A DNA stretch of 64,000 nt, taken from the sequence record PP496439.1; one strand, given 5' to 3'. How positions within the stretch are numbered: the first letter of the stretch is position 1; each line of letters opens with the position of its first letter. The notes beneath the pieces were generated by a model. The model saw nothing but the letters and a program-made list of their open reading frames with translations, was not told where the DNA came from and did no database searches. The translations under genes and the position numbers were made by a program. Shown here in pieces: positions 56,359 through 60,570 of this stretch.

Positions 56359-56380
56359 CCGCCTGCGTGATCCTACGCGG
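56359..56380. repeat. 22-nt exact direct repeat, copy 2
   Basis: Identical to 15414-15435; overlaps the endolysin stop codon. Confidence 0.85.
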
Positions 56381-57047
56381 CCAGTGCGGCAGCGGCGATA
56401 TCCCACAAACGCTTCCGGTCGTCCGCGCCGATCTGACCGCCGTTGATGGCCTGGGTCACATCGAAGAAGCGCCCGGCATCAGCCAGCTTGTTGCAGTTGT
56501 TCTCATCCCAGTAGTCGGCAGCTGCCATGAAGCCTGCTTCGGGCAACGCCAGCAGATCCGGGTTGTTGATGAGTGGGATACCCAGCTTGTTCTGCAACTT
56601 GAGGTACTCCGCTTTGCCGGTACGCATGATCGGGCAACGACCTCGGTACTTCCACCCGTCACCACTCGCCTCGTCGCCGTTACCCATGCGGTTCGCATAA
56701 CAGTTGTTGGCGATGGCCTGGGGTTTGCGCGCCAGCTTGATCGCCAGTGCGTTAGGTGCAACGCGTACTTGCCCTTTGTCGTTGGTTATCTTGACGCGCT
56801 TGCCATTAGCGTCTACCAACCCGTAGCGAGTCGGCCAGGTGTTTGCCAATCCGTCGGCGCTGTAGTTCAAGCCTTCCTCGAACTTGGCAAGGTCACCCGA
56901 CTCATGGTCGATCTGGCCGAGGAACATCGCCATGCGTTGCTTGTTAAGGCTGATCAGGTACTTGTCCATGGCAGCTTGCAGTGGCTTAAGATAAGCCATG
57001 GGCGCCGACGGGAAGATTTTCTTGAATTGCAATTCAGTAAGCAGCAT
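56373..57047 (-). CDS. Glycoside hydrolase family 19 endolysin
   Basis: FLGQIDHESG, EGLNYS, YANRMGNGD..SGDGWKYRGR, INGG motifs; GGAG RBS favours ATG 57047 (57062 alternative). Confidence 0.9.
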   Translation of the reverse strand: MLLTELQFKKIFPSAPMAYLKPLQAAMDKYLISLNKQRMAMFLGQIDHESGDLAKFEEGLNYSADGLANTWPTRYGLVDANGKRVKITNDKGQVRVAPNALAIKLARKPQAIANNCYANRMGNGDEASGDGWKYRGRCPIMRTGKAEYLKLQNKLGIPLINNPDLLALPEAGFMAAADYWDENNCNKLADAGRFFDVTQAINGGQIGADDRKRLWDIAAAALAA

Positions 57048-57375
57048 GGGGTACATCTCCATTGTTCAGGGTAGACAACATTGCCTGCCAGTCTCCGGTG
57101 TTGGGCATTCCATCTTCATGGAACCGGAGGGGCACGACGGGGTGAATGGATAAGGCGTGGTCACGCATTCGCAGCAGAATGGTATCGATGGCCGTGTCAA
57201 CGGACTCACCTCGGTATTCCATTCGTTGCAGTATCTCTTCCCGGAACATACGGAACTGCTCCGGTGGGAAGTTGTACTCAAGACATCGGGCGTGGATGTC
57301 AGCCTTATTCCTCTGGTAGTACGTGACCATTGCGGTAACCCTCGGACATCTGGGGGTGTTGCGTGTTTTGCTCAT
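57034..57375 (-). CDS. Hypothetical protein co-transcribed with the endolysin
   Basis: GGAGAGGGAG RBS on the minus strand; overlaps the endolysin start; no TM segment. Confidence 0.7.
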   Translation of the reverse strand: MSKTRNTPRCPRVTAMVTYYQRNKADIHARCLEYNFPPEQFRMFREEILQRMEYRGESVDTAIDTILLRMRDHALSIHPVVPLRFHEDGMPNTGDWQAMLSTLNNGDVPHAAY

Positions 57376-57507
57376 TGCTCCCTCTCCATGAGGTGTGCTA
57401 AGTGGATGACGGACAGATTAATAATTATTTTGATGTCGCTCGGAATTACGCAAATGGCAGGCTGTAAATAGCTGTAAAATCCAACCACCAATAGCAAGGA
57501 CCTTAGC

Positions 57508-58275
57508 ATGGGCTCTATTCTCTATACCCACCGTCAGATCGTCAATACTCCCAACCTCCGTAAGGAAGCCCGTGAAAGCAAGAGCTTCAAGGAGTACAGC
57601 AAGACCGTCGCGAAGAAAGCCAAGCGCTTGCCGATTCCGGTCCTGTATGTAGACGGCACCCCTACCACCGAACAATTCAGCCGCCTGCTGAATGACCGCT
57701 TGATCTTTCTGGTGTGCTTGTTCCCCCCGACCGCCAGCATCGAGAAGCTTACCGAGCTGTCCAAGGTGTTCAGCAGCCAGCCGTGGTATCTGAACATCAA
57801 CAAGATCAAGGTGTACCAGCTGGACGGCTGCATGGTGACGCGCACCAACCAGACCACCAAAGAAACCACCGAAGAGTTCGACTTCCGTACTGCGCAGATG
57901 TACGCCGTGCAAGAGATCGACAAACTGCTCAACACGCAGGAAGGCCAGATTCTGGCGGCGGCTCAATGCCGTATCGTACCAGAAGGCCAGCCGGACACAT
58001 GGGCACAAGGCGGTGGTGTCACCACGAAGCTGCAAGGCGCACCCGCTGACCAGCAAACCAGCCTGAGTGTTGGTGGGAAGTCGGCGGCAGAGATTCAGGC
58101 GGGTGTGTCCGAAGGTGAAGCGCAGGATGAAACGGAGTATCTGCTTAGCACTCCGGCTAACGCTGAACGTCTTCGCCGGTCCATCGCTGAATTGAGCCGT
58201 AAACCTATTCGCGGTCTTGACGGCAAGTTCATCAAGATGGACCAATCTTCGTTCAAGAAGGAGGACGGGGAATGA
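57508..58275 (+). CDS. Hypothetical protein carrying a C-terminal YefM-antitoxin-like segment
   Basis: AAGGA RBS; ETEYLLSTPANAERLRRSIAEL at 58129-58194. Confidence 0.8.
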   Translation: MGSILYTHRQIVNTPNLRKEARESKSFKEYSKTVAKKAKRLPIPVLYVDGTPTTEQFSRLLNDRLIFLVCLFPPTASIEKLTELSKVFSSQPWYLNINKIKVYQLDGCMVTRTNQTTKETTEEFDFRTAQMYAVQEIDKLLNTQEGQILAAAQCRIVPEGQPDTWAQGGGVTTKLQGAPADQQTSLSVGGKSAAEIQAGVSEGEAQDETEYLLSTPANAERLRRSIAELSRKPIRGLDGKFIKMDQSSFKKEDGE

Positions 58276-58685
58276 GCCTGAGTTACCGTCCCGGCATTAC
58301 CCAAGCGCTCAACCTGCTGGATACGTACCCGGCGGACCGTGACCCACTGGAGGTACTGACCGAATACCGCGAGATGTTGGTAAAGGAACTGGACGACAAC
58401 CTGCCGACCCTGAAAGAGGTACAGGATTGGATGAGTCGCGTCCTGTATCAGAACCATGGCAATCCGTCGCGATCAGAATTTGAGCGCCGGGCTAAGGAAG
58501 AACTGGGTATGGACTTCAGGTTCACTCATGCAGATCGTACGGGCGCGGGTAAGCTCATCGCCGCCCTCACCTGCAAACGCCGCACGGTAAATATCACACT
58601 GGAACCTACCAAGGTACCTCCACGCGGTCAGATGTCCGAGGGCCGGGAACGGCTCCAGATTACCGCAATCAATGTAGAGGAATGA
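58272..58685 (+). CDS. Hypothetical protein
   Basis: GGAGG RBS; ATGA overlaps at both ends. Confidence 0.75.
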   Translation: MSLSYRPGITQALNLLDTYPADRDPLEVLTEYREMLVKELDDNLPTLKEVQDWMSRVLYQNHGNPSRSEFERRAKEELGMDFRFTHADRTGAGKLIAALTCKRRTVNITLEPTKVPPRGQMSEGRERLQITAINVEE

Positions 58686-59629
58686 CCATGGCCTTAGCAG
58701 CCAAGAAAAAGATCCGTCTGAAACGGCGGGATCGGGACAAGGCGGAGCAGCCACCGGTCGAGTCCACCAAGGCCTCGGTGCGCAACATCGTTGGCATCTG
58801 CAACCACAACCCGTATCAGGTAGGCCAGCTGTTGCCTAGCGAGCCTGCGGTTATGGGAATGGACGGGAAGATCACGGGTGCACGTCGCGCCCAATACCTG
58901 TTTGTGCCATATGTCGCCACTCTGCTCCAGTTCCGGGATACCGTGCTGGCGTTCAAAGGGACCGTGATCGTCTTCGATGATCCGGTCAAGCTGGACCACG
59001 TGCTTCAGATTGGTAACGTGCTGGACATCGTGACCAAGAACCATAGCTACCAGTACACCTTCGGCCCGCTTACTTCGGCCAAGCTGGTAGCCGCAGACGA
59101 GCCCCGGCGCCCAATTATGATCGATCAGGAACGGGTCAACGTTCTGCCGAACATGATCAATGCGGTGCAGGGCAGTATCGCTCAAGTTATTATGGAAGCC
59201 ACGCAGAGCCTGATCCCGACCGTCAAGTCGGATGTGCTCAAGACCATCTTCTCGTGGATCAGCGAGTCCGACTTGACCCCGGATCTGCTGTTGCAGGAAC
59301 TGGAAAGGTTGAACGTGGAGGATCCTGAGGTTATGATGGCGCCGTTGCTGGCGTTCCTTGGCACCGAGCAGGGTCAGAAGACATGCAAAGCTTTCGCAAT
59401 GGTGGCAGATTACAAGGCCAAAGGGAAAAGCGTTCCGTATCCGAAGATTGAAAAGGCGACCGGTGTTCCGTCATTCGATCTGCAGTTTGCCATTCGCTAC
59501 ATTCGCCGGACAACCTCTGTGCGTCGGCCAGGTATGACGTTGAGTCAGATCCATGCGGCGCGTAAACTCAAATCCAACAATGATGTTCTGGGCGGGATCG
59601 ATGATCCCGAGGACGAAGAAGATGTTTGA
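58682..59629 (+). CDS. Hypothetical protein
   Basis: GAGGA RBS; phage-like codon usage. Confidence 0.8.
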   Translation: MTMALAAKKKIRLKRRDRDKAEQPPVESTKASVRNIVGICNHNPYQVGQLLPSEPAVMGMDGKITGARRAQYLFVPYVATLLQFRDTVLAFKGTVIVFDDPVKLDHVLQIGNVLDIVTKNHSYQYTFGPLTSAKLVAADEPRRPIMIDQERVNVLPNMINAVQGSIAQVIMEATQSLIPTVKSDVLKTIFSWISESDLTPDLLLQELERLNVEDPEVMMAPLLAFLGTEQGQKTCKAFAMVADYKAKGKSVPYPKIEKATGVPSFDLQFAIRYIRRTTSVRRPGMTLSQIHAARKLKSNNDVLGGIDDPEDEEDV

Positions 59630-60536
59630 GACAATTATGCGAGGGGGCTTAGCATCCTTCATCTACATCGCGATTATCATCGTGGTTATCGTCTGGGTGG
59701 TCAATTCGATATACCGACAGAAAAAGATTGCCCAGATCCGGCAGCACGAACGGCAAGTCAAGCAGACGGAGCAGGACCGCAAGGACGTAATCTCCGACGC
59801 TGAAGACGCCCGTCCCATCGAATACGTGACAGAAGACACGGGCATGTCGGTTCCCAACTTCTTCCTGTCCAAGTTCATCGAAGAGCTGGCGCTGGTCACC
59901 AGTGCGTCGGTGCGCAGGCTCAGCCCGGTGGCCGGTGCAGAAAGTCTGGAGGACTTGCGAGTTGAGTTCTCCCGGCTGCAAGCGTTGCTCCACCTTCAGT
60001 TCGAGCAAGTCGTTGGTCCCGTTCTTGAAGAAGAGATGCGGTCCACGTACGAACGGGTTGAAGCAGCGTTGGCCGACGCCAAGGCGAAAGGCATGGTGCG
60101 AGGCGAACGTGAATTCGGTAGCCTGCCGCATACGCAACCGCCGCGTGAGTATCGCACCTACACCAATGAACGACTGGGTATCCGCGTGCACAGCACCATG
60201 TCGGACATCGAGGTTGCGGAAGCAGTAAAGTGGTCAGAGGGGTTGGTAATCGCGCCCGCTTCGGAAGCTGACAGGGTGGATAAGTTCCGTGAACTCTTGC
60301 AGCAGGGTCAGGTCAACGAAGTAAAGGTTGAACTGATCAATTCCCCGGAACCGCAGATCTATCGTCATCGGTTCGAAGGCTTGAACGTAACCACTACGCT
60401 GCCCCGTGAAGAGGTGGCCGCTGTGGTAAAACCCTATCTGGGGATGGCGGTCACCGAGTCGGTACTGGAAGAGATTAAGTTCATCCTCCAGCAGAAGACC
60501 AGTGACGCAGTAATCGTCGATACAGACGCTACGTAA
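59622..60536 (+). CDS. N-terminally membrane-anchored protein with two short C-terminal repeats
   Basis: TM segment LASFIYIAIIIVVIVWVV; repeats ERLGIRVHSTMSDIEVAEAVK and FEGLNVTTTLPREEVAAVVK. Confidence 0.75.
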   Translation: MFETIMRGGLASFIYIAIIIVVIVWVVNSIYRQKKIAQIRQHERQVKQTEQDRKDVISDAEDARPIEYVTEDTGMSVPNFFLSKFIEELALVTSASVRRLSPVAGAESLEDLRVEFSRLQALLHLQFEQVVGPVLEEEMRSTYERVEAALADAKAKGMVRGEREFGSLPHTQPPREYRTYTNERLGIRVHSTMSDIEVAEAVKWSEGLVIAPASEADRVDKFRELLQQGQVNEVKVELINSPEPQIYRHRFEGLNVTTTLPREEVAAVVKPYLGMAVTESVLEEIKFILQQKTSDAVIVDTDAT

Positions 60537-60541
60537 TACTC

Positions 60542-60570
60542 AGGGTGTTCCTTTCTGGAACACCCTTTTT
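60542..60570 (+). terminator. Rho-independent terminator
   Basis: AGGGTGTTCC/GGAACACCCT stem plus T run. Confidence 0.85.

Follow-up and report, generated by a model that had tools for sequence, protein, structure and literature searches.

The window analysed here is a 64,000-nucleotide stretch representing positions 1-64 kb of the genome of Pseudomonas phage vB_PpuM-Amme-1 (PP496439.1, 202,198 bp; 100% match at identical coordinates), a T4-like jumbo myovirus of Pseudomonas putida from the Estonian CEPEST collection. The gene of interest, Amme1_00073 (57508..58275, + strand), encodes a 255-aa protein that is annotated as hypothetical. It is made up of four parts, all on the + strand: an N-terminal carrier domain (57508..58002; aa 1-165), a low-complexity linker (58003..58104; aa 166-199), a module resembling the toxin-binding part of the antitoxin YefM (58105..58200; aa 200-231) and a C-terminal tail (58201..58272; aa 232-255). 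The YefM-like module, which is variably present among related phages, starts with a short acidic spacer, continues with helix alpha3 (its C-terminal half) and alpha4, and contains the core 22-mer ETEYLLSTPANAERLRRSIAEL (58129..58194, +; aa 208-229). The original prediction, made from the letters of the sequence, had placed a YefM toxin-binding helix at 58126-58194 (+), which corresponds to D207-L229 of Amme1_00073. Our comparisons identify the module (aa ~200-231), perhaps together with some of the tail, as the putative toxin-neutralising region of a YefM-type antitoxin, namely the second half of alpha3 together with alpha4.

The location proposed for the segment, near the C-terminus and after a low-complexity linker, was borne out. 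The core 22-mer ends 26 residues before the C-terminus and lies behind a Gly/Ala/Gln/Ser/Thr-rich stretch, with disorder-promoting residues making up 85% of the 40 aa that precede it. Alignment to PDB chain 2a6q_A reproduced the 14/22 identity to Escherichia coli YefM. Pfam PF02604 matched aa 201-231 at profile positions 43-73 of 74 (E 0.0015), with a score of 18.7 bits that misses the membership threshold (gathering score 29.8). The NCBIfam equivalog model for antitoxin YefM, NF008499, matched aa 201-230 at positions 43-72 of 83 (E 9e-4), and its 19.3 bits likewise miss the cut-off of 121. The YefM chains 2a6q, 6l8e, 6l8f and 7bwf in the PDB align to the same stretch. Thus, three independent libraries (Pfam, NCBIfam and PDB) map one stretch onto one part of one family, and the scores fall under the family cut-offs because just a piece of the family is present. 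Single-library scores alone are unsafe for a scan of the whole window, as comparison of the six-frame window with all of Pfam is expected to yield approximately one chance match at that E-value.

When the 57 C-terminal residues were used to query 5.8 billion proteins, all eight of the word-sharing candidates were 84-aa PF02604 proteins. These natural antitoxins are identical to the core 22-mer at 18-20 of 22 positions, and the match always begins at their own residue 50. The best of the other 22-mers in the window (127,870 in six frames) reached only 8/22 against the same references. A hidden Markov model (HMM) of this YefM subfamily aligned to Amme1_00073 at positions 42-74 of 84 with a score of 47 bits. 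Among proteins of 140-446 aa outside the sister phages, none carried the version of the helix found in the window. The secondary structure predicted by AlphaFold2 is coil at residues 152-207 and helices at 208-212 and 216-230, broken at a Pro as are alpha3 and alpha4 of YefM. This full-protein model has a mean predicted local distance difference test score of 42 from an alignment of four near-identical sequences, and its secondary structure alone was used, as fold matches from a model of such low confidence would be meaningless. The G+C content at third codon positions (GC3) is 0.48 in the helix, versus 0.78 in the carrier domain. The 38 residues of PDB chain 6l8g_A span exactly the module region; no paper on this entry was found and nothing is inferred from it.

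The loci of the natural relatives include an 88-aa PF06769 YoeB gene with a 4-nt overlap. A scan of species-representative genomes returned 151 relatives, and 67 of the best 80 were ~84-aa open reading frames (ORFs) followed by an ORF of 80-97 aa. All 10 of the partners sampled matched YoeB_toxin (E 1e-31 to 1e-40). In the plasmid matches listed, every one with an annotated feature was a Phd/YefM-family antitoxin, and those extending to the next gene adjoined a Txe/YoeB toxin. A profile of the relatives matched E. coli YefM over its full length (3e-28), while Phd, the partner of Doc, matched positions 1-48 only. As Phd is confined to the N-domain of the profile, the phage segment represents the YoeB-specific C-terminal region, and it comes from the part of a YefM-type antitoxin that binds YoeB and not from an antitoxin of the Phd/Doc type. 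The target suggested in the original prediction, toxins of the YoeB/RelE family, was therefore too broad in its RelE part, because the motif is specific to antitoxins partnered with YoeB.

In structures of the Staphylococcus aureus YoeB-YefM complex, alpha3, alpha4 and beta4 of YefM wrap around YoeB in a U shape and block its catalytic sheet, and this C-terminal region is disordered until YoeB binds (PMC7544224). The YoeB contacts named there are T51, Y53, L54, L64, I68 and L71 of YefM, together with a Glu50-Arg69 salt bridge (PMC7544224). Residue-by-residue alignment to the PDB chains revealed that the phage equivalents, E208, T209, Y211, L212, L222, I226 and L229, are all identical to E50, T51, Y53, L54, L64, I68 and L71, respectively.

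As had been predicted, the N-terminal DNA-binding domain is absent: the subfamily HMM aligned solely at positions 42-74 of 84 and Pfam solely at 43-73, so the DNA-binding and dimerisation half (beta1-alpha1-alpha2-beta2-beta3) is not represented. The prediction that no YoeB gene is adjacent also held, and can be extended to the entire 202-kb genome. No YoeB-like ORF was found among 848 ORFs in the window (best E 0.35) or 1,743 ORFs in the other 138 kb (best E 0.4), nor is there a second YefM-like ORF in either part. By these searches, the Amme1_00073 module is an orphan in a phage with no YoeB. In the tail, DGKFIKMD is similar to the final strand of certain YefMs and pairs with DGKLVEVD-type YefM ends in gapped tblastn alignments to two database loci (L025 and L036); homology of the tail to beta4 of YefM is suggestive only. 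Amme1_00073 does not qualify for the Phd/YefM family (PF02604) as that family is defined: it has neither the N-domain nor the operon partner, and its score is under the threshold. It does hold a homologous piece of that family, which probably works like its toxin-neutralising half.

The carrier domain is an ORFan with invariant VCLFP and PW motifs. Sequence and profile searches found no match for it in Pfam, PHROG, NCBIfam, PADLOC or the PDB, phmmer, run exhaustively against 1.84 billion cluster representatives, returned only its own cluster, and a word-indexed search returned only the sister phages. Scans of IMG/VR and JGI metagenomes added no further relatives. However, tblastn revealed homologues in two Vibrio coralliilyticus phages of ~195-208 kb, GR11A and GR7B, namely proteins of 186 and 174 aa that are ~22-25% identical to the whole of the carrier domain and in which VCLFP and PW are invariant. 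By this comparison, the base protein is evidently a conserved jumbo-phage protein. The GR11A and GR7B proteins end without a linker or a module, which indicates that both are an add-on of the P. putida phage lineage. The proposal that the segment had been grafted onto an unrelated phage protein thus stood. The linker is predicted to be unstructured on the basis of its composition and of coil in the low-confidence AlphaFold2 model, and it occurs as two haplotypes among the sister phages. In the phage Peetri (locus L006:1501-2319), a linker unit of ~16-17 residues (G-x-S-x-A-E-I-x-x-G-type) has been duplicated in tandem, producing a protein of 272 aa.

Homologues of Amme1_00073 are present in eight sister phages, and alleles were compared across all nine phages, including Amme-1, which share 88-100% DNA identity at the locus. 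Whether homologues vary in having the segment had been proposed as a check, and they do, with the helix present in 4/9. The long form, with linker, helix and tail, is found in Amme-1, Voja-6 and KoPa-5 (255 aa) and in Peetri (272 aa, with the extra linker repeat). A middle form of 225 aa, in Aura and Illi-2, retains the tail and is missing a 31-codon stretch that includes the helix. A short form of 206 aa, in Pori-4, Lauda and SKa-4, is missing a further 19 codons, the tail. All three length forms are in-frame, and we regard them as intact allelic forms rather than broken genes. As the variable 31-codon stretch matches the Pfam alignment nearly exactly, the YefM-like piece is a naturally separable unit. 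Burial of the segment within the protein's own fold would have spoken against an antitoxin mimic, but the natural alleles and the Vibrio homologues do without the helix, placing it as an appendage outside the carrier fold. Species cluster 3A (Aura, Illi-2 and SKa-4) contains both middle and short forms, and Pori-4 is Amme-1-like up to ~aa 165 and then resembles the helix-less phages, so turnover has been recent and has involved recombination. A short direct repeat is found at the edges of the stretch missing from the short form, which looks like a deletion derivative of the middle form.

Ratios of non-synonymous to synonymous substitution rates (dN/dS) were computed between two divergent long alleles, those of Amme-1 and Peetri, and rest on small numbers of changes. 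The carrier gave 0.10, the linker 0.30, the helix 0.39 and the tail 0.05, and the module gave 0.20 at a dS of 0.36. Across aa 207-220 there was not one amino-acid change in 14 codons at a dS of 0.24. The changes within the module were confined to five polar positions of alpha4 (221, 224, 225, 227 and 230), while L222, I226 and L229 were unchanged; three of the changed positions are equivalent to hydrogen-bonding contacts in S. aureus YefM. The module and the + frame of Amme1_00073 are under purifying selection, and the pattern of change, though based on small numbers, points to a working binding helix rather than a decaying relic.

To find the same helix in other viral proteins, IMG/VR was searched with a degenerate DNA pattern of the conserved positions of the motif, which covers the subfamily that one such pattern catches. 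An earlier alignment-driven scan of viral sequences had given the same narrow pattern, and the degenerate DNA pattern was the more useful. It returned 70 stretches, all of them (70/70) YefM-related by HMM. Sixty-four were part of a near-full-length YefM with YoeB at most 1.5 kb away, and six were without a nearby YoeB. Two of the six are grafts of the helix alone. A 193-aa protein in IMGVR_UViG_3300031548_000020 (L119:696-1277, - strand) has a Zn-ribbon-like N-terminus, the helix at aa 78-99 and DUF551. A 315-aa protein in IMGVR_UViG_3300034025_000053 (L142:2384-3331, + strand) has a TrmB/MarR-like winged helix-turn-helix (wHTH) domain, Pro-rich linkers, the helix at aa 210-231 and another domain. 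Neither has a YefM N-domain, and no YoeB was found within 11-13 kb. Both retain S-I-x-x-L, which the search pattern did not demand, and in both a Pro directly follows the helix. They thus share with Amme1_00073 the unit E-T-x-H/Y-L-L...S-I-x-x-L followed by Pro, the missing N-domain and the missing YoeB neighbour, but they differ in having unrelated carrier domains and in that the helix lies within the protein instead of close to its C-terminal end. The same unit is seen in phrog_7101, which Amme1_00073 and the L119 protein match at positions 110-138 and full YefM at 83-145. These two further independent grafts suggest a general, searchable class.

The other loci without a nearby YoeB are of different kinds. 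A 102-aa protein (L099:1800-2108, + strand; L099/L166) in the 86-kb, high-GC contig IMGVR_UViG_3300035088_000013 combines a Cys/His-rich N-terminus with YefM residues ~23-77; YoeB was not found in its 4-kb locus, and it is an orphan remodelled antitoxin in an actinophage-like contig. Two viral contigs with a GC content of ~0.70 carry copies of a full-length 86-aa YefM (L144:3947-4207, - strand, and L155; PF02604, E 2e-19). No YoeB was found anywhere in these 9-12-kb loci, leaving an orphan complete antitoxin. The last (L164) is too near the edge of its locus for the YoeB neighbourhood to be judged.

Amme1_00073 opens an apparent four-gene operon. Its final codons overlap the ribosome-binding site and start of Amme1_00074 (58272..58685, +; 137 aa), with a 4-nt ATGA overlap between the genes. 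The other two genes, by annotation, are at 58688-59629 and 59622-60536 (+), and a terminator scan found a terminator-like hairpin at 60542-60566 (+) marking the end of the operon. The fourth gene (59622-60536, +) encodes an N-terminal hydrophobic segment and has a very weak ZorB/MotB-like PADLOC match (E 0.015). Amme1_00074 has no match in Pfam, PHROGs, PADLOC or NCBIfam and is not matched by the YoeB HMM. Comparison of Amme1_00074 with the sister loci (L002-L007) revealed that its C-terminal half occurs in two strongly divergent forms, with an overall identity of ~63-65% in phages that are otherwise ~95% identical. The two forms do not segregate with the helix alleles, which makes the locus a mosaic hot spot of recombination.

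An antisense ORF of 275 aa with a TTG start (57418-58245, - strand) covers nearly all of Amme1_00073. It is probably a by-product of codon bias, as selection and homology favour the + frame. Upstream of Amme1_00073, the intergenic region at 57331-57507 is 94% conserved among the sister phages and contains repeated TGTAAA(T/A) motifs, and beyond it lies a divergently oriented gene for a GH19-type endolysin (56373-57047, - strand; phrog_181, E 2e-64), a 75-nt piece of which is 88% identical to the endolysin gene of Burkholderia phage vB_BglM_WTB. The Amme-1 genome also encodes UvsX, its own sigma factor, a topoisomerase II and 7-deazaguanine genes. Outside the window (86902-88002, 157207-162028 and 193988-197668), a 'CRISPR/Cas system associated protein' and a QueC/QueE/GTP cyclohydrolase set are annotated; these, the latter for 7-deazaguanine DNA modification, are likely to be further counter-defence functions.

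The phage has no toxin gene of its own and encodes a near-perfect YefM helix, and the module is thus probably a phage device to disarm a host toxin. In the scenario that we favour, the module would have been captured from a bacterial yefM gene and fused via the flexible linker to a conserved jumbo-phage protein. Once the infection has shut off gene expression in the host, its labile YefM would decay. Free YoeB-type mRNases, or YoeB-like effector domains, could then be bound by the phage-made helix, which would fold onto their beta-sheet groove. With the active site blocked, phage mRNAs on ribosomes would remain uncut. We hold this peptide-level antitoxin mimicry, in which the helix replaces the decaying antitoxin during infection much as T4 Dmd does, to be somewhat more probable than otherwise. 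YoeB binding, neutralisation, its timing and the identity of the natural target are what we infer. That the N-terminal domain stabilises or localises the helix, as was also suggested originally, is no more than a possibility. Strain PaW85/KT2440 carries yefM-yoeB (PP_2940-2939), and yefM could not be deleted from it (PMC7280312), indicating that the host YoeB toxin is active. YoeB-related domains are also predicted as effectors of multidomain defence operons (PtuZ; PMC11980606).

Several points weigh against this scenario. The module lacks the dimeric N-domain to which YefM owes its avidity, the conserved Gly that follows alpha4 is a Lys in the phage protein in a MAFFT alignment, and beta4 is at best weakly represented. 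The helix is missing from 5/9 sister phages. The closest helices are found in Alphaproteobacteria and Chloroflexota, with Pseudomonas absent from the best 80 of 151 relatives in species-representative genomes; nor is Pseudomonas among the best 10 of 39 organism names, by count, in the plasmid matches. A promoter scan found no sigma-70 promoter upstream of Amme1_00073 on the + strand; the conserved upstream region may therefore hold a phage-specific promoter. The phages, Amme-1 and its sisters, are reported to be lytic; they were isolated on a PaW85 derivative without 13 toxin-antitoxin (TA) systems, including yefM-yoeB, and sensitivity to all phages, with the helix or without it, was equal in the wild type and the delta13TA strain and in the delta4phi and delta13TA-delta4phi strains (PMC7616413). 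The strong barrier to G3 jumbo phages is instead prophage-borne, and no phage-host sequence homology was reported (PMC7616413). As deletion of the 13 TA systems had no effect, YoeB of the laboratory host restricts neither helix-bearing nor helix-less phages, and the helix is not needed there. Finally, orphan antitoxins of type II are difficult to detect, and type II antitoxins tend to be very specific (PMC11825919).

Much of this would also suit an evolutionary relic, a yefM fragment that is a neutral passenger on the carrier and is being lost through in-frame deletions. Two nested length variants lack the helix in five of nine near-identical phages, the antitoxin is present only in part, laboratory infections are unaffected by the host TA systems, and the lower GC3 of the helix (0.48 against 0.78 in the carrier) hints at foreign origin. 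However, a passenger would not be expected to show a module dN/dS of 0.20 with 14 codons free of amino-acid change at a dS of 0.24, nor to keep every hydrophobic toxin contact and the salt-bridge Glu intact. The same minimal unit has been retained in two other, unrelated phage proteins, and presence or absence among close relatives is also expected of counter-defence genes. We consider a relic unlikely. The helix might instead be a working binding peptide with another purpose, such as recruitment of a YoeB-type RNase, binding of a non-YoeB partner, protease recognition as a tag or self-association of the carrier. Grafts in proteins with domains as different as an ORFan, DUF551 and wHTH may reflect use as an adaptor. 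The irrelevance of laboratory host YoeB to infection and the contribution of alpha3 to YefM dimerisation are in keeping with such a role. But the phage protein has just the C-terminal half of alpha3, without the dimer-forming beta-sheet core, its conserved positions are exactly the YoeB contacts, and a literature search found no other partner of the YefM helix motif, making another purpose quite unlikely.

The upstream position of Amme1_00073 and its 4-nt ATGA overlap with the next gene mimic the layout of a yefM-yoeB operon, and raise the question of whether it is the antitoxin half of a phage-borne TA pair, with the toxin encoded by Amme1_00074 (58272-58685) or another phage gene. This is very improbable, as there is no YoeB-like ORF in the 202-kb genome. 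Amme1_00074 itself was rejected as a toxin: it matches no toxin family and no YoeB HMM, its Amme-1 allele is 98% identical to that of Pori-4, which has neither helix nor tail, and the neighbour of the Vibrio homologue is unrelated to it. Chance resemblance of a short amphipathic helix might be suspected because the Pfam, NCBIfam and PDB scores each lie under family thresholds, and a six-frame Pfam scan of the whole window would produce about one match at such an E-value. It is refuted by the 18-20/22 identity to natural antitoxins against a background maximum of 8/22, by the word-sharing candidates (8/8 PF02604 antitoxins from 5.8 billion proteins, aligned at residue 50) and by the viral matches to the degenerate motif, 70/70 of which are YefM-related; we give it a negligible probability.

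The wider form of the antitoxin-mimic proposal is that a portable ~25-residue alpha3-alpha4 peptide has been grafted by domain accretion onto unrelated carriers (ORFan, DUF551 and wHTH) and would neutralise YoeB-type mRNases and possibly YoeB-like effectors, such as the predicted PtuZ, with polar positions of alpha4 retuned to toxin specificity between phage lineages. We put this forward tentatively, as a possibility that falls somewhat short of an even chance.

Comparison with known systems places Amme1_00073 closest to YefM of YefM-YoeB (Axe-Txe; PF02604, NF008499; 2a6q, 6l8e, 6l8f and 7bwf). The phage segment is homologous to YefM residues ~43-75 and keeps all of the hydrophobic YoeB contacts and the salt-bridge Glu; it is identical to E. 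coli YefM at 14 of 22 positions and to natural relatives at up to 20. Unlike YefM, it is without an N-terminal domain and without a YoeB gene near or far, the Gly and beta4 are replaced or weakly recognisable, and it sits in the C-terminal part of a phage protein of 255 aa. A precedent for a phage antitoxin is Dmd of T4, which stands in for the labile antitoxins RnlB and LsoB and inhibits the RNase toxins RnlA and LsoA. Like the Amme-1 module, Dmd is phage-encoded without a cognate toxin, and has been proposed to bind directly a host mRNase toxin freed after host shut-off. However, Dmd is small and free-standing and has no sequence similarity to the host antitoxin, while the Amme-1 module is a recognisable piece of an antitoxin that is tethered to a carrier.

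That phages use orphan antitoxins in counter-defence is established for enzymes of the DarG-like kind, namely AdfN of T4-like phages, the ICP1 antitoxin mimic and the chimallivirus DarG2-like protein (PMC11825919, PMC11481870, PMC13309987). These likewise represent antitoxin-derived sequence used as counter-defence and vary among related phages, but they are whole enzymatic type IV domains that reverse the modification made by the toxin, whereas the Amme-1 module is a type II binding peptide of ~25-30 residues that would occlude its target. Amme1_00073 shares two features with the orphan-antitoxin class (Dmd, AdfN and AdfB), being found in a lytic phage without a cognate toxin, with variable presence combined with selection (4/9; dN/dS 0.20). 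It plausibly belongs with the phage-encoded antitoxin mimics, from which it would differ in being a type II binding peptide grafted on a carrier, where the others are free-standing proteins or enzymes. A literature search found no account of YefM-type peptide grafts in phages.

TA systems are now regarded as a large branch of bacterial antiviral immunity, and very few phage countermeasures to type II systems are known, partly because short, disordered neutralising peptides are nearly invisible to domain searches (PMC11825919). The Amme1_00073 locus may illustrate such a countermeasure: a toxin-binding helix alone, tethered, and variable among near-identical phages. The finding prompts one to ask which YoeB-type toxins or effector domains phages meet in nature, and P. 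putida PaW85 and the CEPEST phages offer a natural allele set in which the helix is present, the helix is absent, or both helix and tail are absent. If the proposal is correct, this would be the first case in which a grafted binding peptide mimics a type II antitoxin, and it would show how anti-TA modules hidden in phage proteins can be found.

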